Source: Diplonema japonicum (Eukaryota > Protista > Euglenozoa: Diplonemea). From it: a stretch of 64,000 nt of DNA. Below are positions 5,674 to 30,307 of this stretch, one piece after another (the stretch's first letter is position 1; each line of letters starts with the position of its first letter). Below the pieces are notes generated by a model. The model saw only the letters and a list, made by a program, of their open reading frames with translations. It had not been told where the DNA came from and searched no databases. The stretch spans positions 124,001 to 188,000 of the forward strand of contig OZ025721.1 of the NCBI GenBank assembly GCA_964019335.1. Direction: 5' to 3'. A program made the translations under genes and the position numbers.

Positions 5674-5755
5674 TTAAAACAAAATTGGAGAGATAATAAG
5701 AGCTCAGAAAAGCTCATATGCACAGAGAAGTTTATTGACGGTACGGAATTTCGTC

Positions 5756-7931
5756 GGCGAAGTATCTTGGGGTCACTGTAGACTCTGGGCTCACGTTTGA
5801 CGAGCATGCGGGGGATGTCCTGAAGCGCGCTGACAAGAGGCTGAGGGTTCTAAGGCTCCTGGCTCAGGGACAGCAGGGTGGAGGAGCTTGTTGGGCTCCA
5901 CCAGAGAGCGGCGGTGCTGATCTCGGGTTGTTGGCACGGCTCGGGCACGGCGAAGGTTGTTGCTGAGGCAGGTCTGCTACCCCTCCGACAGATGGCTGAG
6001 GGAGCTGCGGCAGTGTTGACGGCGAAGTCGTTCTGCTGGAGGACCTCCCCGGTTCACCGCGAGGTCCTTGAAGCGGATGACCGGTATGGGCAATGGGTGG
6101 CTGCGTGCGGGAATCCTTGCGCTACGACGCTGCGGACTGCAGGGATGGACGACGCAGGAAGGCTTTAGGAAGTACGACACCTTCGAGCTACTGACTGCCT
6201 CGCCCAAAGTAGCACCGTGGCACGCGATCCTAGTGGAGTTCAGAACTGCCCTTCCCGGCAGGGTTACGCGTTCGTCGCCGGACGTGGATAAGCGGAAGGC
6301 GGCCGTGGAGGCTCTGGCTGCCCTTCCACCGGGTATCCATGCCTATACGGATGGTTCTGTCGTACGGGACCGCCAGAGGTGGAGGGGCGGCGCCGGGGTC
6401 TTCTTGCAGCTCCCCCGCCCCCACGAACCCGTGTCCGAGAGCTTCGGCGTCAGCAATTTCTGCTCTTCCTTTCGGGCGGAGGGTCTGGCTGTCAAGGTGG
6501 CTCTGGACATGGTGGCCGCGCTCCGGAGCGAGCACCCCACGTTGGCAGACAGCCGGCTGTCGATCTGTACCGACTCGCTCTCTCTCCTTGATCAGCTGAG
6601 GGCAGGTCCTTCACGGCAGAGGGAGAGGCTCGACCACGAGACCTGGGAGCTGCTGGTGGCCGCGGCACGTGCGCAAGGTGCACCAGTCATTCTCCAGTTT
6701 GTGCCGTCCCACTGCGGGGTTCCTGGCAACGAGGCGGCAGACAGGCTGGCCGGGGAGGGCACGAAGCGCGAGCTGACTCGCCCCTCTCTCGACTACAGGT
6801 CGGTCAGGGCCCTGGTCCGTCGCCAGATTCAGCAGAGGTCTGCGGTCATTGTCGGGGAGGTGGCCCCGAGGTACGCGAGGGCCACGGGGCTCCGAGCGGC
6901 GTGCTTCCCCCAGTCCCTCCCCAGGCTAGCGGAGACGGTCATCTCGCGGCTGAGGGTAGGGCACTCCGCTCTCTTCTTCGGCTTCCTGCAGGCGGCTGGA
7001 CCGAACAGGAAGAAGGCTGAGCTCAGCTGTCCAGCGTGTGGAGCACAGATGTCCAGGGAGCACGTTGTTGGGGGGTGCGCTGTGGTTGGACGGGGTTCGC
7101 TCGACGCTCCCCCGCAGGTACCGCTGCCCCTTCGCTCATCCCGCCCCCGCCGGCTGTCTCCCTTGACGCCGGCCCTGCGGCCCCCGTGTTGCGCTGAAGT
7201 GAGTAGGGTGAGATCAACTTTTCAATACTTTTAGTGTTTACGTTCCCTTCCCTTCTCTTCCACTTCCTCTCATCCTTTTCTTACCTTACTTACGTTATCA
7301 TCATCATCCGGCGTCTGGCCTTCTCTTACCAGTATGCCCGTCCCCCTTTAAACTTTAAAAATTTAAAATTAACATCCTCTTGTTGTCGTGTGTTTTGACA
7401 TTGTAGTCAAAAACGGATGGCCCGGCCTACTCTGAAGTTGCCCTGATGAGTCCTCTCATCTTCGCACGAACGAGTGTGGTACGGCCATCCCCTCCCCCCG
7501 CCAGCCGGAGTGCAGCGGGGAGAGCAAATGCTTCCCCTATCATCCCCATGCGCACACGCACACTCGCTTCCCCTTTTGATTTTGAGAGATTTTACTCTCA
7601 CCCTTTCATGTTTCGCTCAATGGAGCAATTCCTCTCGAGGGGGCGACCGGGGCCAGTTCCGGTCACCAGAGGTCCCAGTTGAGAAAAACTACGAACTGGA
7701 GTCAAGGTCCCCGTCCGAGTCACGTAGGTCTACGCGGCTTGGAATTGAAGTAATTCAGCCCTCTTCGGCTGTTCCAAACGGTGCACGGGTTGGCGGAGTC
7801 CACAGCTCCATCTGATTGCAGAAGAACTGGTCTTCGCCCTCCCTGTAATATTTCCATGCTTCCCTTCACCTTTCCCCTTCCCAGGTGTTGCTCCCCCATG
7901 GTGGCACCTATTGGTATTTTGAAAAAAAAAA
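5756..7931 (+). pseudogene. 5'-truncated, internally deleted copy of retrotransposon family B
   Basis: Near-identical to reverse complement of 20759-23149 with deletions near 5861, 6071 and 7114; A-tail 7922-7931; preceded by GGAATTTCGTC 5745-5755. Confidence 0.92.
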
Positions 7932-7955: not shown

Positions 7956-7976
7956 AAAAGGAATTTCGTCTCCATC

Positions 7977-9053
7977 GTGGCGGAAGGGAGGGCGGATGCC
8001 TTTCGGATTGCGGGGACGCTGGGTGGGTTGTCTCTCGGGGTGGCGCACCGTAAGGGATGGACTGTGCGGTGCCTACCGGAGACGGAACAGCGGCTCCGGG
8101 AAACCCTCGCAAAACTGCGTACGAAGCGCAAGTTTTTGCTCACCGGGGCCCCGCCGTCCATCACCAGGGCGGCCTTCGACGAAGTGATGGACCACATCGG
8201 TTGGAAACCATCCTCCGTCCTGCGACGCACGCAGACGATGTTCCAGGGCACGAGGCAACTCGTGTTCTTCATCGTCGTCGACAGCCCGCCCCCGAAGTCC
8301 AGGACGTGGCTCCTTGGGGGGCGCCTTGTCTGTCTCCGTGATGCGGACGACCACCCGACCGTCAAGCCGCCCCCTCTCATCAACAGGACGACACCTGCAT
8401 CTGCACCTGCGCTTGCAACGTCCTCGACCCCGGCACCCACATCTTCTCATGTACCTGCACCTGCGCCTACTACACCTGTACCTGACCCGGCACCTGTATC
8501 GGCGTCGACACCCTCGGAGACTGGCCCTGCGGTGAAAGCAACTGGGCTTCCTCCCACCAGCCCGTGGGCGTCCATACCGAGCTCGGTGGCTCCCCCCCAG
8601 CTCGACACTGTGACGTCCCCTACACCGCCCCGCAACGTGTCTGCGGGAAACAAGGAGGGAGTCCCTTCCGGGTCGCCTGAGGTCGCCGCTCTCACTGAGC
8701 TCGTCGCCACGCTGAAGGAGTCGATCGTCGGGCTGCAGAGGACGATCGACTCTCAGCAGGAGATGATCTCCGATCTGCGGACGACGCTCCGCCTCCTCCT
8801 GCCGCAGGCGGCCACGCTGACGACGGGAACGGCAGTGCCGCGGGACCCTACACCGGGGGCGACGACGACACACGACAGTGTCTGGAAAGGGAAGGGGAAG
8901 GGGAAGAAGGGGGCTCCTCCTCTCGCTACGACCTCTGAGGCTGCGGTGACGAACCTGGGTACGAGGGGGCGGGCCAGGTCGTTCGCGGAGACCAAAGATC
9001 TCTTCACCAATGGGGTCAAGGGGCGCTCTGCCTCCATGGGTCCATCCAATTGA
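7977..9053 (+). CDS. Family A ORF1 (gag-like), N-terminally truncated
   Basis: Homologous to C-terminal half of 25793-27943; Pro/Thr-rich linker, coiled coil, KGKGK basic patch. Confidence 0.8.
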   Translation: MAEGRADAFRIAGTLGGLSLGVAHRKGWTVRCLPETEQRLRETLAKLRTKRKFLLTGAPPSITRAAFDEVMDHIGWKPSSVLRRTQTMFQGTRQLVFFIVVDSPPPKSRTWLLGGRLVCLRDADDHPTVKPPPLINRTTPASAPALATSSTPAPTSSHVPAPAPTTPVPDPAPVSASTPSETGPAVKATGLPPTSPWASIPSSVAPPQLDTVTSPTPPRNVSAGNKEGVPSGSPEVAALTELVATLKESIVGLQRTIDSQQEMISDLRTTLRLLLPQAATLTTGTAVPRDPTPGATTTHDSVWKGKGKGKKGAPPLATTSEAAVTNLGTRGRARSFAETKDLFTNGVKGRSASMGPSN

Positions 9054-9194
9054 AGGGGCCCCGCAGAACAGGGGGAGCAGCAGATCTACGACCATGCTCC
9101 CTCTCCTAGTCTCCCTCGCATCCTCCCCAGGAGACTCCTACCTCTCTGTTTCTTCACCGACTTTTCTGCACTGATCCCCACCCTACTCGGGAGG

Positions 9195-12100
9195 ATGTCC
9201 GTCAGGGACCTGCTGGGGCTGCTTGGGCTGGTCGAAACAAACCCTGGCCCACCCAAGAAGCTGCCGCCCCCGTCGCCTAAGGGTCTCAAGGTTGTCTCGT
9301 GGAACTGCAACGGCCTCGTTGCGAAATGGACCGTCGTATCTCGCCATGCTGACTTCTTGTCGCTGGACATCATCATGATACAGGAGACGCACCTGAGGGA
9401 AGGGCACGACACGCCACACCTGCCTGGGTACAGGTCATACAGGAGGGATCGGTTGACACCGGTGACTGACGGCACTGCGACGAGGGGTGGTGGTATTGTC
9501 ACGTATGTCCGCGACGATCTTGCCTGGAGGAGGTTCCGCACGTACTCCCGGCTGGGGACTGTGTCACTGAGAGACTGGATGTGAGGATCTCCTGCGAGAA
9601 GCGTGAGCCGATCACTCTCTCCAACGTTTACCTTACACCGGTAAGCGCGAGCAGAGGCACGAGGGACCCTGAGTACCTGCGGCCTGGCAGCCTTCCCATG
9701 GGGAAGAACACAGTCATAGCGGGTGACTTCAATGCTCACCACAGCTCCTGGGACGCCACGGTGACGACGCCGAACGAGAGGGGGAACGTGGTCAGGGACT
9801 GGCTGGACACCCACGGGTACACCGTCTACAACGACCGCAACGAACCGACGAGGGACTCGTCACGACACGTTCTGGACCTGGTTGTGGGGCGCTGCGCGAA
9901 GCTTGAGCCGAAGACGCTGGGCACGTGGGGCTCCGATCATAGTCCCGTATCCTTTCACCTGCCTCTTGAGGACGTCTACCGTTCGGAGCGCCCCTTCCCC
10001 ACCTGGAATTTCAAAAAAGCCAGATGGGATGACTACACTGCTGCTGTTGCCCGCCTGCTTGCTGGTGTTGACACGGCGGCTCCGATTGACTCTGTCACGA
10101 AGGGGTTTACACAAGCCCTTTTGACTGCGGCGAACGACCACATTCCCCTCTGTGGGATGCGACGTGGCCCGACCCCCTGGTGGACTGCTGAGCTCGAGGA
10201 CGCCTTCGAAGAGCGGAACACCCTGCGCGAACTCCTGCTTCAAGAGGCGGACGTGGTGGAGGAGTACAGGGCGAAGGTGAAGGAAGTCAACCGACTCCTT
10301 GACGAGACGAAGCGTGAGGCATGGGGAAGGATGGCGGCCGACCTCAGCCGGAGCAAGGACCTCGGGGCTGCGTTCAGAGCGGTGAAGAAGCTGGACGGCA
10401 GGCACCGAAAGACACACCTTCCTGTACTCGAGGGAAGATTTGTGTCGGACAAGGCGAAGGCCGACCGGCTGGGGGCGCACTTCGCTAAGCTCTACGGCAG
10501 GCGTGGTGACGGGAACTCGAAGGACGCCGCTCCTTCTGCAAGCAGACTCGGGTGTCAAGCGTTCACCGTGGACGACCTCACCCGCGGCCTGAGAAGGATG
10601 AAGACGCGCAGCGCGGCCGGGGAAGACGGAATCTTCTCGGAGATGCTCCTACACCTGAACACGGACTCCCTCGGTGTCCTCCTTCTACTCCTCAATCGCT
10701 CCTGGCTGATGGGTGTCGTCCCCGGTGCCTGGAAGAAGGGAGTGATCGTCCCGGTACCGAAACCTGGAAAAGATGCGACTCTCTTGGCTTCCTACCGGCC
10801 GATCTGCCTGACCAGCTGCCTCTGCAAGCTGCTGGAGAGGATGATCGAGGAGAGGCTCACGTTTCTTCTTGACGCGGACGGGACGGGAGTCGAGGGACTC
10901 CACGACAGCCAGGCTGGTTTCAGACGCGGCCGCTCCACGGAGGAGCAGGTGGCAACCCTCACTGAGTGCATGTCGAGGAACAAAGACGATCGACGTCTCT
11001 CGGCCGCTCTGCTGTTCGACTTCTCTTCTGCCTTCGACCTGGTGCCCCATGGTGCCCTGCTGGACAAGATGCGAGGGAAGGGTCTCCCCGAACCCTTCGT
11101 GGAGTGGACGCGGTCCTTTCTATGCGGCCGTACTGCTGCGGTCACGATTGGACGGTCGAGGGGGTCGACAACGAAGGTGCGACGGGGTGTCCCCCAGGGC
11201 TCTGTCTTGGGTCCCATCCTGTACACCATCTACGTCGACGAACTCGCCAGGAGACTGGAGGGACTGGCGGACGTCTCGGTGCTCTACGCCGACGACGTGG
11301 CGGTTGTGATCTCCTCTGGACAAGGGGACGTGGCTGGGCTGGAGCGGAAGGCGCAGGCGGTGGTGGATGCGGTTGAGGACTGGTGCAGGGAGCGTGACAT
11401 GCTGCTGAGCACGTCCAAGACGCAGGCAGTCTGCGTCCCCCCCCAGAAACGTCTCGGGGTCTACTTCACTTCGTCACGAGTCCCCCTTCAGCCAGGTGCC
11501 TTCCAGAACCCACTCTTCGGCCTGGGGGTGAACGCCGATGGCACGATCTCCGGGGACCAGGAGCTGGCGGGCCTTCAGGTTGTGGAGGCGGGTGGTGTGC
11601 GGATCCGCTGCGTGCGGGACATGCATGCAGCCGTGCGACGGCCCGACGTGGATTACGTTGCGGCCCGTCCCCTGCCTCTATCTGAACACGCGAGGTACCT
11701 TGGGGTTACGGTGGACTCTGGGCTCACGTTCGGTGAACACGCACAGGACATCCTACGGCGGGCCAGCAAAAGGCTGAGGGTGCTGAAGCTCTTGTCCGGC
11801 ACGTCCTGGGGCAGCAAGAGGGACACTCTGCGGTCTCTCTACGTTACGTACATCCTCCCGCTGCTGCGCTACTGCATGGGGGTCTACTACAGCAGGCTCG
11901 ATGATGTCGGGAGGAAGGACCTGGCTGGGCTTCACCAGGAGGCGGCGGTGCTGATCACGGGCTGCTGGAGTGGCTCCGGAGGGTACAAGCTCCTAGCTGA
12001 GGCAGGACTGCTTCCCCTCGAAAGAATGGCGGAGGGTGCTGCGGCGACGATGACGGCGAAGGCCTTCTGCTGGCAGTCTTCCCCGGTTCACAGGGAGACG

Positions 12101-13342
12101 GTCAAGCTGAAGCAGGCGAACAGGCTGGGGTGTGGGTGGCTGCGCTCTGGCTACCAAGCACTGCGTCGATGCGGGTTGGAACCAAAGGTGCACTTCGAGT
12201 ACCTGTCGGCTACGCCCCTGGCGGCCCCGTGGCAGACAGGCATGGTCGACTTCAGGACTGACCTCCCCGGCGGGGTCACGCGATCGTCGCCAGACGCGGA
12301 CAGGCGGAAGGCGGCCGAGGCTGCTCTTGCGGCTCTCCCCCCGGGCATCCATGCCTACACGGATGGCTCGGTTGTACAGGTCGGACAGAAGGCGAAAGGT
12401 GGCTCTGGGGTTTATCTGCAGCTGCCTCCCCCCCTGACCCCTGTGTCTGTGTGCCATGGCGTCAACGACTTCTGTTCATCTTTTCGGGCAGAGGGCATGG
12501 CTGTGAAAACGGCGCTGGATATGGTGGCTACCCTCCGAAAAACACACCCTTCGCTGGCGAAGTCCCCGCTGTCGATCTGCACCGACTCCCTCTCCCTCGT
12601 CGAGCAGCTGCGAGCTGGCCCAACGCGACAGAGGGAGAAGCTCGACCACCAGACGTGGAGCCGGCTGGTGTCCGCGGCGCGCACGCAGGGGACACCGGTG
12701 GTCCTCCAGTTTGTGCCCTCCCACTGTGGGGTGGACGGGAACGAGAAGGCTGACGCTCTGGCCGGGGAGGGAACGAAGCGGAAGCAGGACAGGCCCTCCC
12801 TTGACTACCGATCAGTGAGGGCCCTGGTGCGACGGTGGGTGGTGCGGAGGTCCGCGGAGCTCATAACATCCCTCGCCCACAACTACGCGGTGGCGACCGA
12901 GCTTCGGTCTGCGCACTTCCCCCTTGGCTTCCCCAGACAAGCTGAAACGGTCATCTCGCGGCTGCGGATTGGTCACTCGGCTCTCTTCTTCGGCTTCCTG
13001 CAGACTGCTGGCCCGAACAGGAAGCACAAGGGTGTGCTCCGGTGCCCAGCCTGCCACGCAGCACCGATGTCCAGGGAGCATGTTGTCGGTGGGTGCCCTG
13101 TGATCGGGAGGGGGGCGATCGACACTCCTGCTGGTACTCCCTCCCTAGCGTTCTCCCTGTCGAGACGCGTGACCCAGATCTACGACCTCATTGTTGAGTC
13201 TGGCCTGCTCGCCTGGTCACGCTCCGGACTGTTCACCTCGCCATCATCCCTGGCGTCTACAGACGTCACTGCACCTTCAAACGTGCCGCCCCCTCCTCCG
13301 GTCTCTCTTGACGCCGGTCCCGCGGCCCCCGTGCTGCGCTAA
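9195..13342 (+). CDS. Family A ORF2: 2A-like peptide, AP endonuclease, RT, RNase H, CCHC; 1-nt frameshift near 9525
   Basis: SWNCNG, IQETH, GDFNAHH, GSDH (APE); YADD; ORFs 9195-9584 and 9581-13342 rejoin by comparison with family B (ASEEAPFVLP). Confidence 0.9.
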
Positions 13343-13854: not shown

Positions 13855-15237
13855 ATGGATCAGCAGACCAGCGCGGACGCCTCCACGAGGCCCCCACTGG
13901 ACAGCCTGCAGATGCAGGTGGACGAAGACGCCGCGGCGATGCCAGAGTTAAATCTGGTATTCGAAGAAGAAGAAGAGAAGAAGAAGGAGAAAAAGGACGA
14001 GGTGCGGAAGGGCAACTGGATCATCGGTCCGCTGCCGAAGGGAGTGGAGGAGAAGGGCGCAGCTGCGATTCTCGCAGCAACGGTCTCAGAGCAGACCGAG
14101 AAGGTCGTCATCCTGACGACGGAAGGCGCGTCCTTCCTCCTCTACACCGCACGCACCCCCCCCCACCACACCTGCATCAAGGTGAACGGCGCCACGGCAG
14201 AAGTCCTGCCGGCGATAAAGGTGGCCGACCCCCTGGAGTCCAGGGCTGCAGGAGGGAAGAAGTGGTCGAGGAAGGGGGAAGAAAAAAAAAAAAGAACAAA
14301 AGTCCACCAAGACAGGTACAGCCCAGAAGAATTTCTGGAATTCTACGGCCGGTCGGTAGGGTGGCAGCTCTACTGCAAGGCAGTAGAAGAGTGGAGGAAG
14401 AGGACCGCCACACCCCAAAAAAACACACAGGAGCCCCCCCAACAACAGCAACAACAGGCAACAATCTCGCCAGATATGGTAGCCCAGATGCAGAATCTGC
14501 ATCAAGAAGTTGCGGCGCAGAGGGCCGAACTCTCGGCGCAGAGACAGGAGATCACCGCGCAGAGAGAGGAACTGCAGAGACAGAGGACGTCTCTGGCAGA
14601 AGCACAGTCCAGTTACCCGGCCCTGCAGAAACAGGTCAGTGCGCAAGGGGAGGCGGTGCTGAAGCAGGGGGAAGGACTGGCAGCCGTCCAGACCAGCATC
14701 CAACCCCTGCAGAAACAGGTAAGTGTGCAGGGGGAGGAGCTGCGGAAGCAGGGAGAGGGTCTGGCAGAGATCAGGACCAGCCTCCCGGCTCTGATGGAGC
14801 AGCTGAGGAGTCAACAGGAGGCTCTGGAGAAAGGGGTGCGTGCCATGATGGCCAAGCAGGAGGAGCGGGACGCGAGGGACACCGCCAGAAGAACGGCCCT
14901 AAAGGCCAAAAAGGCCCAAACCACCGCCACACCCACAGCCCCGACACCGTCCAAATTCATCGGACCGGAGCTGGAACCGAACACCCCACAGCAACACCAG
15001 CCATCCTCGGGCTCGGAAACGGAGTTGGAAGACACTCCCGCCGGAGCAAAACCAGGAAGGCGCAGGGGCCAGGAATGGGCCTCTGCAAAGGTGTCGCTGA
15101 AGGCAGCGCCCTACGCACCAGGGGGCTCGAAGGGTTCGAAGGGGACAACCTCCTCCTCCACCTCGACATCGCCGACACCGAGCACACCGGACACAGCGAA
15201 GAAGTCCGGGAAAGGCGGAAAATCAAAGAAGAGGTGA
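13855..15237 (+). CDS. Family C ORF1, coiled-coil protein
   Basis: 460 aa; Q/E-rich heptads with 28-aa repeat (LQKQVSAQGE../LQKQVSVQGE..); basic C-terminus. Confidence 0.8.
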   Translation: MDQQTSADASTRPPLDSLQMQVDEDAAAMPELNLVFEEEEEKKKEKKDEVRKGNWIIGPLPKGVEEKGAAAILAATVSEQTEKVVILTTEGASFLLYTARTPPHHTCIKVNGATAEVLPAIKVADPLESRAAGGKKWSRKGEEKKKRTKVHQDRYSPEEFLEFYGRSVGWQLYCKAVEEWRKRTATPQKNTQEPPQQQQQQATISPDMVAQMQNLHQEVAAQRAELSAQRQEITAQREELQRQRTSLAEAQSSYPALQKQVSAQGEAVLKQGEGLAAVQTSIQPLQKQVSVQGEELRKQGEGLAEIRTSLPALMEQLRSQQEALEKGVRAMMAKQEERDARDTARRTALKAKKAQTTATPTAPTPSKFIGPELEPNTPQQHQPSSGSETELEDTPAGAKPGRRRGQEWASAKVSLKAAPYAPGGSKGSKGTTSSSTSTSPTPSTPDTAKKSGKGGKSKKR

Positions 15238-15740
15238 AAAAGGTGATAAGTTTTTTCCATTTTACCATAATAGATAAGAAAGAAAAAAAAAAGAAAAAAG
15301 AAAGTGTTTCCCTATTAAGCCCCCAACCCCCCAATTCGTCTACAAAAAAAAAAATAATAAAAAAAAAAAAAAAAAAAAAAAACCATAAAAAAAAAAACAA
15401 AAACAAAAAAAAAAACATAAAGAAAATAAAAGAACAAGAGAAAAAAAAAAAAACAACAAAAAAAAAATATAAAAATAAAAAAAAAATAATACACGACGAC
15501 GACGACGACGACGACAACGGGTCACAGCAATGTCATCTCTCTGCGCGAAGGAAGCTCGTACGACTTGGCTACAACTCGCGGCTAAATCCTGGCCGGCCCC
15601 GCACGTATAGGGGTGTCCAAACGGGACAAGGCGTTAGTGGTGGCGACGTAAGGTCTGTTAGGGCCGGCCCCCCCCAAGTCGTACAACCCTATCTTCGAAG
15701 ACCTGAAGGTAGGGGTGACCACAAAGGCAGAGTGACATAC

Positions 15741-18700
15741 ATGCTGAAACGACCCTCGACCACACCGAGAAAGATGCGCAAAGGTTGCGGACCACATGAT
15801 ATGGACATCTTGGCGTGCGGTGACGTCGAGCAGAACCCGGGGCCAGCCGCGAAAGACGGATGGCTGAAGATAGTCTCGCTGAACGTGAGGTCCCTCAGAG
15901 CTAGGAAGGCCGAAATCGAGAAGGCTATCGAAGAAACAGCGCCGGACATCCTGTGTCTCCAAGAGACACACCTAACATCAGACGATGCGATCCACGGCTG
16001 GTTCGAAGGGTACAGAGCTTTCCGAAGAGACAGGACGCGACCGAGAAGGAGGAATTTCCCCATAAAAGGGGGCGGCTTACTGACTCTCGTGAAAGAAGGC
16101 ATCAACGCTAGCGGTGTCGAAAGGAAGGAGAAGAAAAATGACGTGACGGAAAGACTGGACGTCAAAATATACCCGCCAGGTCAAAAGGAGATCCTCCTGG
16201 TGAACATCTACCTTCCACCAACATCGCCGTCAGATCCGAGCGATGACAGACCGAGCATCGACACCTACTTCAACCCGAACACACTCCCGACAGGGGACAG
16301 AACCTTAATCATGGGGGATTTCAACGCCCACCACCCTCTGTGGGACGGGAGAAGAAAGAAAGAGGACCTCATAGGTGACAAAGTCGCAAAGTGGATGATC
16401 GAGAAAGGGATGCGACCCTGGAATGACAAAGCCACACCGACACTATTGAACACAAGAGGTTCCTTATCATCACCGGACCTGGTGATAAGCGGGCCAGACA
16501 TGGACTCTAGATCCTGGACAACCCTCGATTCATGGGGGTCTGACCACATACCCATGTCCATCCGGATAAGAACGAAATACGAAACCGGACCAACCATTAA
16601 GAAATTCAGCTTCAAAAAAGCTGACTGGGAGGGGTACAGAAATCATCTGGAGTACACCCTGAGGCACCTGCAGAGAACAGGAGACCCGGTCAGGCTAAAC
16701 AAGCAGTTCACTGAAGCAGTCAAGGAGGCCGCCAGGCTCTTCATCCCAAGAGGGGGAGCGAGAGGCGGGAAAGCGTGGTGGACTGAAGAGCTGACGCAAC
16801 TGGTTGGAAGAAGAAACGCTCTGAAGAAGGAGATTATGTCGGACATCGGCATCCCATCGATAGAACAATGCGAGAGGCTTGGTGAAATCAGCAGGCAAGT
16901 GCAGAAACAGATCGATGAAGGGAAGAAAAGAGCGTGGGCCGACTACATGAAGGAGCTGTCTCAGAAAAAGGACTTGGGACACGCTTTCAGGACGATAAAA
17001 ACGCTCGATGGCAGGAAGGACAAAGATCCAGTAGCACCACTAATGGCAGGCGGCAAGCTACACACATCGGCGAAGCAAAAAGCAGACGTCCTTGTGGAGC
17101 ACTACGCAAAGGCTTTTGCACCCCACCTTAACAAGGACACAAAGAAGATGCTGGACGGTGAAAACAGGAAGTCCAAAGTGATCAAGGACTTGAGGGACAG
17201 GGTCACTTGCCCAGGGATAAGCATGGAGGAACTGAAGCACGCGCTGAGGCAGTTGAAGAAGGGGAAATCCCCGGGCCCAGACGGTGTCTACAACGAGATG
17301 CTGAAACACCTGGGGGGGACGGCCATGGACACATTACTCCATCTGTTCAATATGTCATGGGAGAAGGGAGTGGTACCATCAGACTGGAGGTTCACGCACA
17401 TAATCCCACTTTACAAAGGAAAGGGCAAGTCAAGAAGTGATCCGGCATCGTACAGACCGATATCGCTAACCTCCAACATTTCAAAGACAATGGAGAGGAT
17501 AGTAAAGATAAGGGTCGACTACCACCAAGACGTGGGAGATGTGAAGAGGGTGCACAAAATGCAGTCAGGTTTCAGGAAAGGGCGCTCCACAGAAGAGAAC
17601 GTCCTGCAAGTGACCACGAAACTGAACCGCATCAGAGACGATGAGTTCTGCGGCGGACTTTTGCTCTTCGACCTGAAAGGAGCCTTCGACACAGTGTGGC
17701 ACAAGGGTCTAAATGCGAAAATGAGGAGTAATGGCTACCCGCAAAGAATTACGGACTGGGTGGCCGCTTTCCTAGACCAGAGGATCGCTGCCGTCAAGGT
17801 GAGTGGCGAAACAGGGAAGCACGAACACATAACGGGTGGGGTTCCACAGGGAACCATCCTTGCCCCAACCCTCTTCTCGATCTACATGGACGACCTCTCA
17901 GAGACGTTCGAAAAGGAGGTCATTGATGCCGTGATGTACGCAGACGACATTGCGGTGGTGCTGCACGAAAAAGACCTGGACAGCTTGAATGGAAAACTGA
18001 TGAAGATCCTGAGGGTTGTGGAGAGCTGGTGCTCGAGAAACTCGATGGTGATCTCCAAGGGAAAGACAGAGTTCCTTCCCGTTGCTGGCATCTCCTATCC
18101 GCAGAGAACACTGAAGGGGAAGATCAGAGCAACTTTCAAGACCGGCGAAGAACTCGAGGTGGTCGAAAAAACAAAGCTGCTCGGAGTCACCTTCGAGGAG
18201 GACATGCTTTTCTCCGAACACTCCAGAGACGTCTTGGAAAGAGGTGAAAGCAGGGTCAGGCTGCTGAGCTGCCTTGCGGGAACGAGATGGGGTTGCAAGA
18301 AGGTGGTGTTGAGGGCTCTATACCTCACATATGTGCAACCAGTCTTCAGATACTGCTTGGGCGTGTACGGGTCATTTCTCCCGAGCGGGAGGAACACGCC
18401 CCACGAAGGCATCAAGAAGCTTCAATACAGGGCAGCGGTGAAGATCACAGGCTGCATCGCGTCATCAGAGACATTCGCGACACTGAACGAAGCGGGGCTG
18501 TGGACCCTGGATGCGCTGATCGAACACGACAGCCTGTTGCTCTACGAGTCACTGATGAGAAAAGTGGACACCGCCGCATACCAGGCGACTCAGCCTCTGG
18601 AGGATCTGACCAGGTACGAGAAGCTCCTACCAAGGAGGACTTGGTCTGACAAACAGAGAGAGGCATCGAAAGCCTACAAACTCCCAGAGAGGACGGGCAC

Positions 18701-19724
18701 ACCTCACTCGGGCGCCGTCTTCATGAGGAGACTCGCGGTTGCACCCTGGCAAAGATTCGAGGGGCAACTCGTGCTCTCCCCCTTCCTAGACACGCAGGTG
18801 AAAAGGACGGACCCAAAAGAGGTCAGGAAAGAGGCAACAACGAACACCCTGAACAGGTTATGCGAGAAACACGGCCGGGCATTCTGCATGGTGTTCACAG
18901 ACGGGTCCGTAAAGGATGGGAAAAACGGAGGCTCGGCCGCCATCCTGCTGCACAACGGGTCCGATGCTGCCTACGGGATCAGCGGTGGACTGTATTCGAC
19001 ATCCTACAAATGCGAACTCAGGGCCCTGAGGCTAGGGATCCGACTGGCGACAAGACTCTCAGAGAGGAAGCTTGCAAGCCAAGGGATGGTTCTGATATGC
19101 ACAGATTCGCAGTCGGTGATACGGAAGATGTGCCAGGGACACATGTCGGCAGCCTCCAAAGATGACTTCGAACTCTGGCAGGAGGTCGCGAGCTTGACAG
19201 GCAGAGGCCACAAGCTAATCGTTCAATACGTCCCGAGTCACTGCGGGTACAAGTGGAACGAGAAGGCGGACCAGAAGGCAAAAGAGGCGAGCGAAAGACT
19301 GGCCCACACCCGTGAGACAGACATTGAGGTGGTTAAAACTCTGGTGAGGAAGCATGTCATCAGAAGCCACCTCCGCCTATGGAAGGATACTGGCGTCACA
19401 AAGACGTACAGGGAGCAGTTTGCCGGAAGTTACGAGAAGTTCGAGGAGCTGGACAGAAAGAAAGAAGTGGCGATCATGAGGCTGAGGGTGGGGAAGAGCC
19501 CACTCACTTGCGGATACCTACTCATACCCCCAGTCGAGGAGGTCCCGTGCCATCTATGTTCGCAACCCCAGACTCTAAGCCACCTCCTACGGGAATGCCA
19601 AGACGGAAAGAGGATCGACCAAAGGAGTCAGATCTTCGGTAGCTCCCTTCCTTCCCTCAAAGTCCTCCTGTCCACCGACGCCTGTAAGACCGCCCAGCTC
19701 TTGGAGCGGCAGGGAACATTGTGA
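15741..19724 (+). CDS. Family C ORF2: 2A peptide, APE, RT, RNase H, CCHC (start uncertain; frame open from 14262)
   Basis: ILACGDVEQNPGP, SLNVRS, LQETH, GDFNAHH, GSDH, GVPQG, YADD, FTDGS, VPSHCG..NEKAD, CHLC..H...C. Confidence 0.92.
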   Translation: MLKRPSTTPRKMRKGCGPHDMDILACGDVEQNPGPAAKDGWLKIVSLNVRSLRARKAEIEKAIEETAPDILCLQETHLTSDDAIHGWFEGYRAFRRDRTRPRRRNFPIKGGGLLTLVKEGINASGVERKEKKNDVTERLDVKIYPPGQKEILLVNIYLPPTSPSDPSDDRPSIDTYFNPNTLPTGDRTLIMGDFNAHHPLWDGRRKKEDLIGDKVAKWMIEKGMRPWNDKATPTLLNTRGSLSSPDLVISGPDMDSRSWTTLDSWGSDHIPMSIRIRTKYETGPTIKKFSFKKADWEGYRNHLEYTLRHLQRTGDPVRLNKQFTEAVKEAARLFIPRGGARGGKAWWTEELTQLVGRRNALKKEIMSDIGIPSIEQCERLGEISRQVQKQIDEGKKRAWADYMKELSQKKDLGHAFRTIKTLDGRKDKDPVAPLMAGGKLHTSAKQKADVLVEHYAKAFAPHLNKDTKKMLDGENRKSKVIKDLRDRVTCPGISMEELKHALRQLKKGKSPGPDGVYNEMLKHLGGTAMDTLLHLFNMSWEKGVVPSDWRFTHIIPLYKGKGKSRSDPASYRPISLTSNISKTMERIVKIRVDYHQDVGDVKRVHKMQSGFRKGRSTEENVLQVTTKLNRIRDDEFCGGLLLFDLKGAFDTVWHKGLNAKMRSNGYPQRITDWVAAFLDQRIAAVKVSGETGKHEHITGGVPQGTILAPTLFSIYMDDLSETFEKEVIDAVMYADDIAVVLHEKDLDSLNGKLMKILRVVESWCSRNSMVISKGKTEFLPVAGISYPQRTLKGKIRATFKTGEELEVVEKTKLLGVTFEEDMLFSEHSRDVLERGESRVRLLSCLAGTRWGCKKVVLRALYLTYVQPVFRYCLGVYGSFLPSGRNTPHEGIKKLQYRAAVKITGCIASSETFATLNEAGLWTLDALIEHDSLLLYESLMRKVDTAAYQATQPLEDLTRYEKLLPRRTWSDKQREASKAYKLPERTGTPHSGAVFMRRLAVAPWQRFEGQLVLSPFLDTQVKRTDPKEVRKEATTNTLNRLCEKHGRAFCMVFTDGSVKDGKNGGSAAILLHNGSDAAYGISGGLYSTSYKCELRALRLGIRLATRLSERKLASQGMVLICTDSQSVIRKMCQGHMSAASKDDFELWQEVASLTGRGHKLIVQYVPSHCGYKWNEKADQKAKEASERLAHTRETDIEVVKTLVRKHVIRSHLRLWKDTGVTKTYREQFAGSYEKFEELDRKKEVAIMRLRVGKSPLTCGYLLIPPVEEVPCHLCSQPQTLSHLLRECQDGKRIDQRSQIFGSSLPSLKVLLSTDACKTAQLLERQGTL

Positions 19725-20560: not shown

Positions 20561-20632
20561 TCCTCGGTAGTATAGAGGTCAGTATATCCGCCTGTCACGC
20601 GGATGACCCGGGTTCAATTCCCGGCCGGGGAA
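20561..20632 (+). tRNA. tRNA-Asp (GTC)
   Basis: TCCTCGG/CCGGGGA acceptor, TCCGC-CTGTCAC-GCGGA anticodon arm, GGTTCAATTCC, T5 terminator. Confidence 0.95.
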
Positions 20633-20675: not shown

Positions 20676-20747
20676 TTCCCCGGCCGGGAATTGAACCCGG
20701 GTCATCCGCGTGACGGGCGGATATACTGACCTCTATACTACCGAGGA
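20676..20747 (-). tRNA. tRNA-Asp (GTC), convergent copy with U33C change
   Basis: Reverse complement of 20561-20632 except anticodon loop CCGTCAC. Confidence 0.9.
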
Positions 20748-21484: not shown

Positions 21485-24400
21485 TCAGCGCAACACGGGG
21501 GCCGCAGGGCCGGCGTCAAGGGAGACAGCCGGCGGGATGAACGAAGGGGCAGCGGTACCTGCCGTTGCCGCAGACGGCGACGTGAAGACCCCGGATCTGG
21601 CCCAGTCAAGCAAGCCAGAGTCGGCGATGAGGGTGAATACCTGCGTCACGCGTTTTGACAGGCACTCCACCAGCGAGGGGCGTCCATTGGGAGCGTCGAG
21701 CGAACCCCGTCCAACCACAGCGCACCCCCCAACAACGTGCTCCCTGGACATCCGAGCTCCACACGCTGGACAGCTGAGCTCAGCCTTCTTCCTGTTCGGT
21801 CCAGCCGCCTGCAGGAAGCCGAAGAAGAGAGCGGAGTGCCCTACCCTCAGCCGCGAGATGACCGTCTCCGCTAGCCTGGGGAGGGACTGGGGGAAGCACG
21901 CCGCTCGGAGCCCCGTGGCCCTCGCGTACCTCGGGGCCACCTCCCCGACAATGACCGCAGACCTCTGCTGAATCTGGCGACGGACCAGGGCCCTGACCGA
22001 CCTGTAGTCGAGAGAGGGGCGAGTCAGCTCGCGCTTCGTGCCCTCCCCGGCCAGCCTGTCTGCCGCCTCGTTGCCAGGAACCCCGCAGTGGGACGGCACA
22101 AACTGGAGAATGACTGGTGCACCTTGTGCACGTGCCGCGGCCACCAGCAGTTCCCAGGTCTCGTGGTCGAGCCTCTCCCTCTGCCGCGAAGGACCTGCCC
22201 TCAGCTGATCAAGGAGAGAGAGCGAGTCGGTACAGATCGACAGCCGGCTGTCTGCCAACGTGGGGTGCTCGCTCCGGAGCGCGGCCACCATGTCCAGAGC
22301 CACCTTGACAGCCAGACCCTCCGCCCGAAAGGAAGAGCAGAAATTGCTGACGCCGAAGCTCTCGGACACGGGTTCGTGGGGGCGGGGGAGCTGCAAGTAG
22401 ACCCCGGCGCCGCCCCTCCACCTCTGGCGGTCCCGTACGACAGAACCATCCGTATAGGCATGGATACCCGGTGGAAGGGCAGCCAGAGCCTCCACGGCCG
22501 CCTTCCGCTTATCCACGTCCGGCGACGAACGCGTGACCCTGCCGGGAAGGGCAGTTCTGAACTCCACCAGGAACGCGTGCCACGGTGCTACTTTGGGCGA
22601 GGCAGTCAGTAGCTCGAAGGTGTCGTACTTCCTGAAGCCTTCCTGCGTCGTCCACCCCTGCAGTCCGCAGCGTCGTAGCGCAAGGATACCCGCACGCAGC
22701 CACCCATTGCCCATACCGGTCATCCGCTTCTGCTCAAGGACCTCGCGGTGAACCGGGGAGGTCCTCCAGCAGAACGACTTCGCCGTCAACACTGCCGCAG
22801 CTCCCTCAGCCATCTGTCGGAGGGGTAGCAGACCTGCCTCAGCAACAACCTTCGCCGTGCCCGAGCCGTGCCAACAACCCGAGATCAGCACCGCCGCTCT
22901 CTGGTGGAGCCCAACAAGCTCCTCCACCCTGCTGTCCCTGAGCCTGGCAAAGTAAACACCCATGCAGTACCGGAGTAGCGGGAGAACGTACGTGAGGTAC
23001 AGTGAACGGAGCGTGGCCTTCTTGCACCCCCAGGTCGTGCCCGACAGGAGCCTTAGAACCCTCAGCCTCTTGTCAGCGCGCCTCAGGACATCCCCCGCAT
23101 GCTCGTCAAACGTGAGCCCAGAGTCTACAGTGACCCCAAGATACTTCGCCGACCCACACAGAGGCAAGGGGCGAGCCGCCATGTAACCAATGTCGGACCT
23201 CCGGATGGCGGCGGGAATGTCGAAGGACCGTTTGCCACCCGCCTCCACGACCCGAAAGCCAGACAGCTCACGGACGCCAGACAAGGTCCCACAGACCCCA
23301 ACCCCAAGATTAAGGACAGGGTCCTGGAAGGCCCCCGGGCAAAGCGGGACACGCGACGAAGAGAAGTAGACATTAAGCCGCTTCTGATAGGGAACGCACA
23401 CTGCCTGCGACTTGCTGGAGCTCAGCAGCATGCCCCGTCTCCCACACCAGCCCTCAACCGCGTCCATCACAGCCTGGGCCCCTCGCTCAAGACCAGCCAG
23501 GTCGCCCTGCCCGGCTGAGACCACCACCGCAACATCGTCGGCATAAAGAACCGACAGGTCCGCCATCCCAACCAGCAACCTGGCTAGCTCGTCGACGTAG
23601 ATGGTGTAAAGGACGGGTCCCAGCACAGACCCTTGGGGCACCCCTCTCCTCACCTTCGTCGTCGACCCTCGCGAACGACCCACCGTGACCGCCGCCGTAC
23701 GACCGCAGAGGAAGGAGCGCGTCCATTCGACGAAGGGCTCAGGGATCCCCTTCCTCCGCATCATGCCCAGGAGAGCTTCGTGCTGAACCAGGTCAAACGC
23801 AGATGAGAAGTCAAACAGCAGGGCAGCCGACAGACGACGACTGTCTTTGTTCCTCGACAGACACCCGGTCAGGGACGCCACCTGCTCCTCCGTGGAGCGG
23901 CCCCTCCTGAAGCCAGCCTGGCTATCGTGGAGACCCTCAACGCCCGACGCGCTAGAGTCTAGGAGAAAGGTAAGCCTCTCCTCTATCATCCTCTCAAGCA
24001 GCTTACAAAGACAGCTAGTGAGACATATGGGACGGTACGATGCAAGCAACGTGGCGTCCTTCCCTGCCTTCGCCACTGGAACAATCACCCCCTTCTTCCA
24101 GGCACCCGGCACGATCCCCGCCTGCCATGAGCGATTGAGGAGCAGAAGTAGAACCCCGAGCGAGGGTTGGTCGAGGTGGAGAAGCATCTCCGCGAAGATG
24201 CCATCATCACCCGCTGCACTGCGTGTCTTCATCCTTCCCAGACCGCGGGTGAGATCATACACCGTAAAGGCGTGGCACCCAAGCACGTTCGTCGAAGGAG
24301 CTACGTCCACCGCGTCCCCATCACCACCCTGGCCGTAGAGCTTGCCGAAGTGAGCCCCCAGGCGGTCGGCTTTCGCCTTGTCCGTCACGAACCTCCCCTC

Positions 24401-25651
24401 GAGAATGGGAAGGTGCGGTCTGCGGTGTCTGCCGTCCAGCTTCTTCACCGCCCTAAACGCAGACCCGAGGTCCTTGCTCCGACTGAGGTCAGCCGCCATC
24501 TCACCCCAGGCCGCGCGCTTCGACTCGGTCATGAGTTGGTTTACCTCCTTGACCTTCGCCTTGTAGACCGCCGCCACGCTGTCGTCCTCAGTCTCAGCCG
24601 ACTTGAGGAAGCGATCCCGCAGGGCGTTCCGTTCTTCGAAGGCGTCTTCGAGTTCGGCCGTCCACCAGGGGGTCGGGCCTCGTCGCACTCCGCAAAGCGG
24701 AATGTGGTCGTCAGCTGCATGCAGAAGAGCCTCTGTAACCTCTTTCGTGAAGGAGTCAATGTGGGCCTTCGTGTCGATCTTGGTCAGAAGGGCAGCGGCG
24801 GCCGCGGTGAAGTCGTCCCACCTGGCCTTTTTGAAGTTCCAGGTAGGGCAGGGTCGCTCCGAGCAGTAGGCGTCCTCAAGCGGCAGGCGGAAGGAAACCG
24901 GGCTGTGATCAGAGCCCCACGTCCCCAACGTCCTCGGCTCCAGTTCCGCACAACGTCCCACCACCAGGTCCAGAACGCGTGGCGGTGAGTCCCGCGTCGG
25001 CTCGTCACGGTTGTTGTAGACGGTGTAGCCGTGGGTGTCAAGCCAGTCCCTGACCACGTTCCCCCTTTCGTTGGGCGTTGTCACCTTGGCATCCCAAGAG
25101 CTGTGGTGTGCGTTGAAGTCGCCAGCAACGATCGTGTTCTTCCCCACAGGTAGGCTGCCCGGCCGTAGGTACTCGGGGTCCCTTGTTCCTCTGCTTATAC
25201 TCACAGGCGTGAGGTACACGTTGGAGAGGGTGACCGGGACGCGCTTCACACAGGAGATCCTCACGTCTAATCGCTCAGTGACACTGTCACCTTCAGGGAG
25301 TACGAAAGGAGCTTCCTCCGAGGCAAGGCAGTCACGGACATACGTGATGACACCACCGCCTCTCGTCGCAGAGCCGTCCGTCACCGGTGTTGTGCGGTCC
25401 CTCCTGTAGGACGTGTATCCAGGCAGGTATGGTGTCTCATGCCCCTCCCTAAGGTGTGTCTCCTGGATCATAATGATATCCAGCGTCAGTAGGACAGCGT
25501 GGTAGGACACGGTTGACCACTTGGCGGCAAGACCGTTGCAGTTCCAGGACAGGACCCTGAGTCCCTTCGGCTTCGGGGGTGGGAGCTTCTTAGGTGGACC
25601 GGGGTTCGTCTCAACCAGCCCAAGCAGCCCCAGCAGGTCCCTGGCCGACAT
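21485..25651 (-). CDS. Family B ORF2: 2A-like peptide, APE, RT, RNase H, CCHC
   Basis: Uninterrupted ORF with LVETNPGP, SWNCNG, GDFNAHH, YADD, YTDGS; paralogous to family A ORF2. Confidence 0.95.
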   Translation of the reverse strand: MSARDLLGLLGLVETNPGPPKKLPPPKPKGLRVLSWNCNGLAAKWSTVSYHAVLLTLDIIMIQETHLREGHETPYLPGYTSYRRDRTTPVTDGSATRGGGVITYVRDCLASEEAPFVLPEGDSVTERLDVRISCVKRVPVTLSNVYLTPVSISRGTRDPEYLRPGSLPVGKNTIVAGDFNAHHSSWDAKVTTPNERGNVVRDWLDTHGYTVYNNRDEPTRDSPPRVLDLVVGRCAELEPRTLGTWGSDHSPVSFRLPLEDAYCSERPCPTWNFKKARWDDFTAAAAALLTKIDTKAHIDSFTKEVTEALLHAADDHIPLCGVRRGPTPWWTAELEDAFEERNALRDRFLKSAETEDDSVAAVYKAKVKEVNQLMTESKRAAWGEMAADLSRSKDLGSAFRAVKKLDGRHRRPHLPILEGRFVTDKAKADRLGAHFGKLYGQGGDGDAVDVAPSTNVLGCHAFTVYDLTRGLGRMKTRSAAGDDGIFAEMLLHLDQPSLGVLLLLLNRSWQAGIVPGAWKKGVIVPVAKAGKDATLLASYRPICLTSCLCKLLERMIEERLTFLLDSSASGVEGLHDSQAGFRRGRSTEEQVASLTGCLSRNKDSRRLSAALLFDFSSAFDLVQHEALLGMMRRKGIPEPFVEWTRSFLCGRTAAVTVGRSRGSTTKVRRGVPQGSVLGPVLYTIYVDELARLLVGMADLSVLYADDVAVVVSAGQGDLAGLERGAQAVMDAVEGWCGRRGMLLSSSKSQAVCVPYQKRLNVYFSSSRVPLCPGAFQDPVLNLGVGVCGTLSGVRELSGFRVVEAGGKRSFDIPAAIRRSDIGYMAARPLPLCGSAKYLGVTVDSGLTFDEHAGDVLRRADKRLRVLRLLSGTTWGCKKATLRSLYLTYVLPLLRYCMGVYFARLRDSRVEELVGLHQRAAVLISGCWHGSGTAKVVAEAGLLPLRQMAEGAAAVLTAKSFCWRTSPVHREVLEQKRMTGMGNGWLRAGILALRRCGLQGWTTQEGFRKYDTFELLTASPKVAPWHAFLVEFRTALPGRVTRSSPDVDKRKAAVEALAALPPGIHAYTDGSVVRDRQRWRGGAGVYLQLPRPHEPVSESFGVSNFCSSFRAEGLAVKVALDMVAALRSEHPTLADSRLSICTDSLSLLDQLRAGPSRQRERLDHETWELLVAAARAQGAPVILQFVPSHCGVPGNEAADRLAGEGTKRELTRPSLDYRSVRALVRRQIQQRSAVIVGEVAPRYARATGLRAACFPQSLPRLAETVISRLRVGHSALFFGFLQAAGPNRKKAELSCPACGARMSREHVVGGCAVVGRGSLDAPNGRPSLVECLSKRVTQVFTLIADSGLLDWARSGVFTSPSAATAGTAAPSFIPPAVSLDAGPAAPVLR

Positions 25652-25792
25652 CCGTTCAAGTAAGGAAGGGATCAAGGAAGGGAGGACGTCGTACAAGTGA
25701 TGTGGAAGGTGTCTCCTCGGCTGTATGCGCGGGAGACCAGGAGAGGGGGCGTGGTCGTCGATCTGACGCCCCCCCTGCTCAGCGGGACCCCT

Positions 25793-28900: not shown

Positions 28901-28937
28901 CAGGCGTCCTGTCACATACCGCAGGTACCCTTAAATG

Positions 28938-28941
<4 letters not shown>
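28901..28941 (+). repeat. 41-bp conserved motif followed by poly(T), copy 1
   Basis: CAGGCGTCCTGYCACATACCGCAGGTACCCTTAAATGTCTC, also at 40189 and 61129. Confidence 0.9.
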
Positions 28942-28968
<27 letters not shown>

Positions 28969-29024
28969 TTATCAATTCCAGTGTTGCAACGTACAGTTCA
29001 CAAATCCCCCTTTACAGAATCGTT

Positions 29025-29888
29025 ATGGGATGCGTTAGTTCCACAACGGTTGTCAAGGAGCAGAAAACGAAGAAGAAGACACGGGCAAGGAAGGTTTCAT
29101 CGACGCGTACAATAAAAACATCTTACCTGCACGAGAAAAAGAACAAGCCGCCGCCCTCACCGCACATGGAATCGAACATAGACAACGCGCTGCTGATGAT
29201 GCTGGGGAAAACGGTCGTGACGGACGTGGAAGAAGAGCTTTCGCCGGCACCTGCACCTGCGAGGAGACGAAGAGCAACAATTGTCGATCCGGCCACAACG
29301 ATTGACATACCAGTGGCTCGACAGAAAGTGGAACCCCTTGCTGTGATGGAGCTTAGCGACAGTAGCCACGGGACCTCAGTGAGTTCGAACTTTGACAAAA
29401 CCAGTGTAACAGCGGATCTTTCAACATTGAACTCCTTCACAGACAACGGGACTATCTTCGCACCGTCGGACTTTTGTGAGGATTTACCAGAGCTACATTA
29501 TACAAACCTGCCTCAGCCCCAGAGCCAGGTCCCGTCCCCGACTAGCAGTCGTTTATTTCGTAAAAGGCTGAGCACCAGCAACAAGACCTACGACACCACT
29601 TGGCTTGACAAGCTCATTGGGGAAACCAACAATTGCGGACATGAACTCATTTCTGTTTGGCTCGAGGGTAGGTTCTTCCGTGCACCGTCTTGCACGATAC
29701 TAACGGACTCCATGCCCTTCACCAGCGACAACTTGCTCCTCCACGAGGAACTCGTCCAGAAAAAGAAGCCTGCCCGTCCGGTATTTTCACAACTGAGCCT
29801 TACCCACAGTGTGGGGAGCATCCGAACTACAAGCAGTATTGGCAGCCCGATGTCACGCAGCCTCAACAAAAAGAAGAGAGCCTTTTGA
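29025..29888 (+). CDS. Hypothetical protein with N-terminal dual acylation signal
   Basis: MGCVSS start (Gly2/Cys3); 287-aa ORF between T-tracts. Confidence 0.7.
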   Translation: MGCVSSTTVVKEQKTKKKTRARKVSSTRTIKTSYLHEKKNKPPPSPHMESNIDNALLMMLGKTVVTDVEEELSPAPAPARRRRATIVDPATTIDIPVARQKVEPLAVMELSDSSHGTSVSSNFDKTSVTADLSTLNSFTDNGTIFAPSDFCEDLPELHYTNLPQPQSQVPSPTSSRLFRKRLSTSNKTYDTTWLDKLIGETNNCGHELISVWLEGRFFRAPSCTILTDSMPFTSDNLLLHEELVQKKKPARPVFSQLSLTHSVGSIRTTSSIGSPMSRSLNKKKRAF

Positions 29889-30058: not shown

Positions 30059-30307
30059 TATTTTTTTTTTCTTCCTGTTCTTCTTCTTCGTCTCCTTTTG
30101 AACGAATCAGTTTCTGGGTAGGGTTGCAAACAAATGGGGGCGATCAGTCACCTCAAGAACAATGCATGCAAATGAATGAAATACAAAAGAAAATAAATAA
30201 AAAACATTCCCATTTACATGGGTGGTCTTTCATTGAACAGTGAAACTCATTTCCCATTGCTTCCTTTTCCTTTACGTCCACTACAAGATACCTCCCAGAG
30301 GGTGAAG

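Follow-up and report, generated by a model that had tools for sequence, protein, structure and literature searches.

The window analyzed here, a stretch of 64,000 nucleotides (nt) from contig OZ025721.1 of the Diplonema japonicum assembly GCA_964019335.1 (forward-strand positions 124,001 to 188,000), contains two copies, A and B, of one lineage of long interspersed nuclear elements (LINEs). The copies represent two recently active subfamilies of non-long-terminal-repeat (non-LTR) retrotransposons of this diplonemid genome, with the domain order APE endonuclease, reverse transcriptase (RT), and RNase H. In both copies, a single frame runs from open reading frame 1 (ORF1) through one UGA and 47 sense codons to a Met, a 2A-like peptide ending in ..RDLLGLLGLVETNPG|P, and ORF2. 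This layout may reflect two serial recoding events on one non-LTR mRNA, in which readthrough of the UGA meters entry into ORF2 and StopGo of the 2A type frees the ORF2 protein (ORF2p). The chances of this two-step arrangement are judged about even.

Copy A lies on the plus strand and is truncated at its 5' end. It retains the last ~358 codons of ORF1 (7972-9050), which is 973 amino acids long in intact A copies. The in-frame UGA ending ORF1 (9051-9053) stands in the context CCAAU UGA AGGGG, with the DNA sequence AAT TGA AGG GGC around the stop. The 47-codon linker of 141 nt follows (9054-9194) and is open in the ORF1/ORF2 frame only. It contains two hairpins, S1 (9070-9104), with 10 base pairs and a 15-nt loop located 16 nt 3' of the UGA, and S2 (GUCUCC/GGAGAC, 9109-9135), with an invariant stem and a variable loop. 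Met48 and the noncanonical 2A-like peptide MSVRDLLGLLGLVETNPG|P (9195-9251) are placed directly 5' of the endonuclease domain. ORF2, encoding the APE endonuclease, RT, and RNase H, extends from 9252 to 13342 and ends in TAA. This copy is dead: it is homologous to the A family from 7972 onward only, and its ORF2 is disrupted by the loss of 1 nt near 9525. Its junction is also present in intact A copies elsewhere in the genome.

Copy B lies on the minus strand and shows the same arrangement. Its ORF1 (25796-27943) encodes 716 amino acids from the first Met, with a coiled-coil-like segment and a Gly/Arg/Lys-rich tail; the ORF1 protein (ORF1p) is without a Pfam domain, and no usable Atlas match was found for it. 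The UGA (25795-25793; DNA context AAT TGA AGG GGT) is followed by the 47-codon linker (25792-25652), with hairpin S1 of 11 base pairs at 25742-25776 and S2 at 25711-25737. The ATG of Met48 (25651-25649), with no AUG between it and the ORF1 stop, opens the 2A-like peptide MSARDLLGLLGLVETNPG|P (25595-25651). ORF2 (21485-25594) is intact, again with APE, RT, and RNase H, and ends in TGA at 21487-21485, leaving the frame open for 1435 codons past the ORF1 stop. Pfam matches after the stop of both copies are, in order, Exo_endo_phos (4e-13), Exo_endo_phos_2, and RVT_1 (9e-32), with RNase_H (1e-8) C-terminal of the RT at residues 1111-1252 after the stop. The description given by the sequence-only reading of this locus is accurate with respect to the single in-frame UGA, its context, the 47 sense codons up to the ORF2 Met, and the linker peptides of A and B.

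In this genome, UGA keeps its standard meaning as a stop. As the same reading had stated, UGA ends host genes: TGA terminates the gene for a PALP enzyme of the cysteine synthase type (62261-63253), a DNA methyltransferase gene (30218-31705), and an ORF without a Pfam match (28935-29888). ORF2 itself ends in UGA in B versus UAA in A, and no further in-frame TGA occurs in the >2100 codons of copy B. Neither in A and B nor in the sister families described below is there an Rfam match of note to a selenocysteine insertion sequence (SECIS), a ribozyme, or an internal ribosome entry site (IRES).

Evolution of the junction in subfamilies A and B

A search of the genome (62.5 Mb in 132 contigs) finds at least 14 B junctions at 100% identity and at least 19 junctions of the A type. 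More than 50 matches are spread over many contigs, some of them beginning internally, including 5'-truncated copies. TGA is present in all of the ~18 A and 21 B junctions in an alignment that is not anchored on the stop, and many copies show intact frames of 1429-1437 codons past the stop. Since dozens of copies are intact and nearly identical, subfamilies A and B can be taken as young and active and the UGA as a property of active elements. Their ORF2 is most closely related to ORFs from the transcriptomes of Diplonema ambulator (RT identity, ~50%) and Flectonema neradi.

Comparison of the intact A copy L051 with B gives a proportion of synonymous differences (pS) of 0.54 over ORF2, a synonymous distance (dS) of about 1, and a ratio of nonsynonymous to synonymous distance (dN/dS) of 0.17, so the two subfamilies are old relative to each other. 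Their DNA homology starts exactly 5 nt 5' of the UGA and continues without a gap for 908 nt. The flanks of the stop are conserved from -5 to +5, in contrast to the upstream ORF1 tail, of which ~145 codons just 5' of the UGA are unalignable as DNA (35% ungapped identity between A and B).

The 47 linker codons show neither an indel nor a stop in this comparison. They differ at 21 of 36 synonymous and 19 of 105 nonsynonymous sites, corresponding to a dN/dS of 0.19 with distance correction and 0.33 without it. The check that the sequence-only reading had proposed for the linker, dN/dS and indel phase, gives this range of 0.19-0.33 and no indel between A and B, and the synonymous differences that it listed are real, with a significant excess (P = 5e-4, binomial test) restricted to the ORF1/ORF2 frame. 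In the remaining two frames, the ratio exceeds 1 and stops occur in A as well as in B. Simulation of 40 random substitutions with the observed transition share yields so few amino acid changes without a stop with P = 2e-4 (range, 2e-4 to 6e-4) for the whole linker. The signal of purifying selection is confined to codons 1-27, adjoining the UGA, where the differences at codon positions 1, 2, and 3 number 2, 2, and 10 (simulation P = 1e-3). Codons 28-47 are fast evolving, and the 60 nt 5' of Met48 are 72% pyrimidine in A and B versus 48% in ORF2. By this measure, codons 1-27 evolve as protein-coding sequence in the ORF1/ORF2 frame. Neither an in-frame AUG nor a conserved CUG or GUG is found 5' of these codons in A or B, and ribosomes passing the UGA would be the simplest route to them.

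The 3' end of the open stretch encodes the 2A-like peptide M-S-(V/A)-R-D-L-L-G-L-L-G-L-V-E-T-N-P-G-P (9195-9251 and 25651-25595), a motif that is central to the interpretation and had been omitted from the sequence-only reading. The peptide can be regarded as being under strong purifying selection, because 18 of its 19 residues are identical in A and B despite six synonymous differences (dN/dS 0.05); its skipping activity is putative. The sequence L-V-E-T-N-P-G-P in both copies agrees with the C-terminal (V/I)-E-x-N-P-G-P of class A 2A peptides, and the upstream segment RDLLGLLGL is Leu rich as in that class (compare FDLLKL in F2A). NPGP is located upstream of the APE domain in 46 of the best 150 endonuclease relatives from a library of 1.8 billion proteins. 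2A-like peptides at the N terminus of ORF2p are established for L1Tc, Ingi, CR1, L2, and Rex1 (PMC3708506).

The stems of the linker RNA that had been noted before, GGGAGCA/TGCTCCC in A and GGGGCGT/ACGCCCC in B for S1 and GTCTCC/GGAGAC in both for S2, are present and pair in every variant. All 16 hairpin pairs are standard in each of the five distinct variants. Two pairs of S1 are changed on both sides (AU to GC) between A and B, and one A variant has a GU intermediate. This covariation is suggestive, not strong. The nucleotides immediately 3' of the UGA form a self-complementary octamer in A, GGGGCCCC (9055-9062); the octamer at this place in B, GGGGUCCC (25791-25784), self-pairs with two G-U pairs.

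The RNA level provides further hints. The transcriptome-derived EukProt protein P0001 has 1383 amino acids, is identical to the ORF2 of A, and starts at Met48. It suggests transcription of the element. It also suggests that the RNA contig contains the in-frame stop, because the ORF caller would otherwise give a longer or 5'-partial ORF. Contigs of unknown kind from four public runs reproduce the junction sequence. No joint skipping the stop is found in these contigs, and no variant at 25793-25795 occurs among the best-supported differences of the four runs (a further 263 rank lower). The contigs of a related organism leave the junction of the elements uncovered. A word-based protein search with the linker region matched only the ORF2 of this genome itself, and the sole result of a metagenome scan was an unrelated LINE that has its own AUG and a CCHC ORF1. 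None of the APE relatives recovered by a full HMMER search spans the linker; the nearest is a transcriptome ORF of Diplonema ambulator that starts 14 residues before HPGP.

Sister families and genomic surroundings

Junctions vary among the further LINE families of the genome, whose endonuclease is 28-44% identical to that of A and B. Family C comprises 13 copies whose junctions agree to at least 99% (L043:4040-4100, plus strand; the same site in L031 is on the minus strand). Its ORF1 ends in UAA, and its ORF2 is in the +1 frame. The ORF2 frame opens exactly at G-UAA-AAA-GG, within the last 8 codons of ORF1, where ORF1 reads GUA-AAA-AGG. It contains no AUG for 327 codons and has a canonical GDIEANPGP 137 codons in, and an AUG start of this ORF2 can be considered impossible. 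The end of ORF1 in this family reads ..GUA AAA AGG AAG..UAC UAA, in which the Ty1-like A_AAA_AGG is a candidate +1 slip site.

At locus L040, ORF1 (540 amino acids) and ORF2 are in frame across a single UGA (AUA UGA AAC; L040:3970-3972, plus strand), as in A and B. No Met follows for 224 codons, a distance reaching into the endonuclease domain, and the element is without a 2A peptide. This family (G) has only 2-3 copies, and the sister copy L041 carries a frame-shifting deletion of 208 nt. The junctions of family C and L040 suggest that ribosomes commonly pass from ORF1 into ORF2 without an AUG in these elements. Judged by their junction sequences, the sister families seem to have other ways to the same outcome, a +1 shift in family C and an in-frame UGA without 2A at L040.

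Family D, without 2A, combines a -1 overlap with a Met of its own. The 11-mer AATTGAAGGGG, found at three further loci, is a chance match lying antisense inside the ORF2 of this family. Families E, F, and H feature a Lys-rich spacer of variable length and Mets 11-31 residues before a canonical GDVExNPGP. In family F (L034, L035, L036, L042, L050, and the window copy at 14262-19724), the spacer from ORF1 to the 2A peptide is Lys rich and A rich, and the relation of the ORF1 and ORF2 frames is -1, 0, or +1 by copy because the spacer length varies. The sense strand of this family is so T poor that several frames remain open for hundreds of codons. A block 35-80 codons before the NPGP of families E, F, and H (L033:4420-4560, L035, and L039) shows ~95% nucleotide identity between E and F, with unalignable flanks, and contains two palindromic GGCCGGCC(CC) repeats ~60 nt apart. 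A ribozyme like that of hepatitis delta virus or another RNA element was suspected in this block; it gave no Rfam match, and attempts to fit the ribozyme fold by eye failed.

In the window, two inverted tRNA genes (20561-20632, plus strand, and 20676-20747, minus strand) are located between stacked LINE copies, with a pileup of LINE fragments from families A, B, and F to one side. The stretch at 5858-7696, directly 5' of the truncated copy A, is the 3' portion of a B copy. The region at the 5' end of copy B contains a stretch (28027-27989, minus strand) ending in ..CACAGAGAAGTTTATTG, similar to the 3' terminus of spliced leaders of Euglenozoa, and the 79 nt at 28049-27971 recur at 5677-5755.

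Proposed readthrough of the UGA and rival accounts

The reading favored here is that readthrough of the UGA gives a chain of ORF1p, linker, and 2A/ORF2p, which StopGo then splits; its probability is put slightly above even. Most ribosomes would stop at the ORF1 UGA, which would deliver ORF1p in bulk. A minority would decode the UGA via a near-cognate tRNA, as in programmed readthrough, and the conserved context CCAAU UGA AGGGG together with the downstream hairpin may aid this step. After readthrough, translation would proceed through the 47 linker codons into the 2A-like peptide, where StopGo at ..VETNPG|P would free an ORF1p extended by 65 residues. That ribosome would continue into an ORF2p beginning at Pro. 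The result would be a low ratio of ORF2p to ORF1p from one mRNA, with cotranslational separation replacing a protease. Readthrough, its stimulation by the hairpin, and skipping by a noncanonical 2A peptide are the steps that we infer from the features of the junction.

Several observations weigh against this mechanism. Known leaky contexts include UGA-CUA(G), UAG-CAA-UUA, and UGA-CGG; the UGA-AGG of AAU UGA AGG GG(C/U) is not known as a leaky context. Known readthrough stimulators typically have a spacer of ~8 nt, whereas S1 begins ~16 nt past the stop. The covariation of S1 comes from only two independent lineages, with a score reached by 12 of 500 shuffles, and the folding energy is no better than that of shuffled sequence (z of +0.5 to -1.0). 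An open linker is weak evidence when taken alone, since simulated sequences are open in ~0.44 of trials, and the frame match has a chance of 1 in 3. Codons 28-47 are nearly neutral, with 8 of 20 amino acids identical (P = 0.15). In the 2A-like peptide, Leu occupies the position of Asp12 of class A 2A peptides, which follow (G/H)D(V/I)ExNPGP; the expanded core has D, G, C, or N at this position. Deep mutational scans found no D12 substitution that retained activity in F2A or P2A, and natural 2A variants with G, C, or N at this position can be active (bioRxiv 10.64898/2026.09.24.754024). The sequence-only reading had concluded that ORF2 is made by UGA readthrough, which is supported in part. The coding-like codons 1-27, the fixed UGA, and the covarying hairpin speak for this conclusion; the stop context, which is not a known leaky one, and the rival start at Met48 speak against it.

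The rival that survives best has ORF2 translated from Met48, by termination-reinitiation or internal entry, with an 18-residue 2A-like leader that would be split off as in L1Tc and Ingi. The UGA would then be an ordinary stop and the linker an RNA spacer with entry signals (S1 and S2). This account is unlikely, with enough in its favor to be taken seriously. Its AUG, 17 codons 5' of NPGP, is conserved in A and B and is the first AUG past the ORF1 stop in B, and the near-neutral evolution of codons 28-47 agrees with such a start. A 2A-like sequence at the extreme N terminus of ORF2p is a known arrangement (PMC3708506). The Diplonema ambulator transcriptome ORFs P0164, P0279, and P0002 start MELTDCGDVHKNPGP, MDVLRCGDVHPNPGP, and MDVNRCGDVHRHPGP, with the first Met only 11-14 residues before (N/H)PGP and with His replacing Glu in the core. 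In families E, F, and H, the relation of the ORF1 and ORF2 frames differs between copies. Separate initiation just upstream of the 2A peptide fits because of these families and the D. ambulator ORFs. In SART1, RNA structure by the ORF1 stop stimulates the restart at ORF2, according to a study cited in PMC3708506.

Initiation at Met48 leaves unexplained the frame-specific synonymous change at third positions of codons 1-27 and the constant length and frame of the 141 nt beside an ORF1 tail riddled with indels. Termination-reinitiation of the SART1 or calicivirus type, with a noncoding spacer and a restart codon that overlaps the stop or is close to it, does not match this junction, in which the in-frame AUG lies 141 nt past the stop and the spacer has a coding signature. 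Reinitiation after an ORF of 716-973 codons is deemed highly improbable (PMC3894237). An out-of-frame AUG (9094) precedes Met48 in copy A, and family C is without any AUG upstream of its 2A peptide. Should ORF2 nevertheless start at Met48, the elements would carry an ordinary L1Tc-like N-terminal 2A, and the conservation of the linker would need another explanation.

Trans-splicing is the normal route to monocistronic mRNAs in Euglenozoa. An mRNA containing only ORF2 could arise by internal trans-splicing of a spliced leader, with codons 28-47 as the acceptor tract and Met48 as the first AUG. The pyrimidine content before Met48, equally high in A and B despite poor sequence conservation, and an AG located 1 nt before the AUG in A are in line with such an acceptor. 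Copy B has no AG between tract and AUG; its first AG lies past Met48, at a position where splicing would eliminate the start codon. A pyrimidine-rich stretch is also expected from a Leu/Pro/Ser/Phe-rich peptide upstream of 2A, a search for genomic copies joining the 3' end of the leader to the start region of ORF2 gave 0 matches, and the coding signature of codons 1-27 is left unexplained. These points make trans-splicing improbable.

Removal or rereading of the UGA, by A-to-I editing to UGG, by selenocysteine, or by a small intron, would satisfy the coding signature, which needs only passage of the UGA by whatever route. Diplonemids edit mitochondrial RNA heavily. The element has no match to a SECIS or any other Rfam family, the contigs of the four runs show neither a stop-skipping joint nor, among their best-supported differences, a variant at the stop of copy B, and the transcriptome ORF begins at Met48 and is not an ORF1-ORF2 fusion; this route is very improbable. 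Equally improbable is chance, by which the frame match and the open linker would be accidental and ORF2p would come from other copies or by other means: the simulated openness of a GC-rich stretch of 47 codons and the 1-in-3 frame match would allow it, against which stand the synonymous excess of P about 5e-4 in one frame only and the identical layout in two diverged, active subfamilies with dozens of intact, nearly identical copies.

Comparison with known systems

The translation of the second ORF of LINEs has been a puzzle for decades. Readthrough of the UGA in A and B, if true, would mean that LINEs can use the stoichiometry trick of retroviral Gag and Gag-Pol. It would also provide a natural case of readthrough coupled to StopGo and would widen the sequence space of 2A peptides to Leu at the Asp12 position. 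The diplonemid LINEs would then form a natural series of solutions to the translation of ORF2.

In murine leukemia virus (MuLV), Gag-Pol is made by readthrough of a UAG with a pseudoknot 8 nt downstream. Subfamilies A and B share with gammaretroviral Gag-Pol the single in-frame stop between a structural and an enzymatic ORF, the structured RNA downstream, and the presumed purpose of a low ratio of enzyme to structural protein. They differ from MuLV in the UGA with AGG, the plain hairpin ~16 nt downstream, the proposed separation by StopGo, and the nature of the element as a non-LTR retrotransposon. The analogy to MuLV drawn by the sequence-only reading is incomplete in this respect, as a 2A-like peptide and not a protease would separate the products.

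L1Tc/Ingi and other APE-type LINEs (Heras 2006; Odon et al. 2013, PMC3708506) show an NPGP-type peptide directly before the endonuclease, as do A and B, and L1Tc/Ingi also share the euglenozoan host and the order APE-RT-RNase H. The known elements of this kind mostly have a single ORF, and their 2A is read from the start of that ORF itself. In contrast, A and B have a long ORF1, an in-frame UGA, a linker under coding constraint, and Leu in place of the canonical Asp.

Human L1 and SART1, with its UAAUG coupling, likewise have a bicistronic RNA in which ORF2 depends on events at the ORF1 stop (cited in PMC3708506, PMC3894237, and PMC5009743); in SART1, RNA structure near the stop is involved. 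The spacers of these elements are noncoding or absent, whereas the 141-nt spacer of A and B is coding-like and has a 2A-like peptide at its end. Among the mechanisms named in reviews of LINE ORF2 translation and of recoding are reinitiation, IRES-like entry, 2A, frameshifting, and bypassing, with no readthrough ahead of 2A (PMC3894237; PMC5009743), and literature searches found no described case of a leaky in-frame stop ahead of a LINE 2A.

A related arrangement of modules is seen in single-ORF retrotransposons of the pseudoscorpion Cordylochernes scorpioides, in which a 2A peptide is located between the ORF1p and ORF2p modules (2026 preprint, PMC13405545). As in A and B, the 2A-like peptide stands between modules on one translational path. 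No stop is reported between the modules of the Cordylochernes elements, whereas the UGA of A and B would gate entry into ORF2. The 2A peptide is the known component in LINEs, and the junctions of A and B suggest a leaky in-frame UGA ahead of a 2A-like peptide as the new one.

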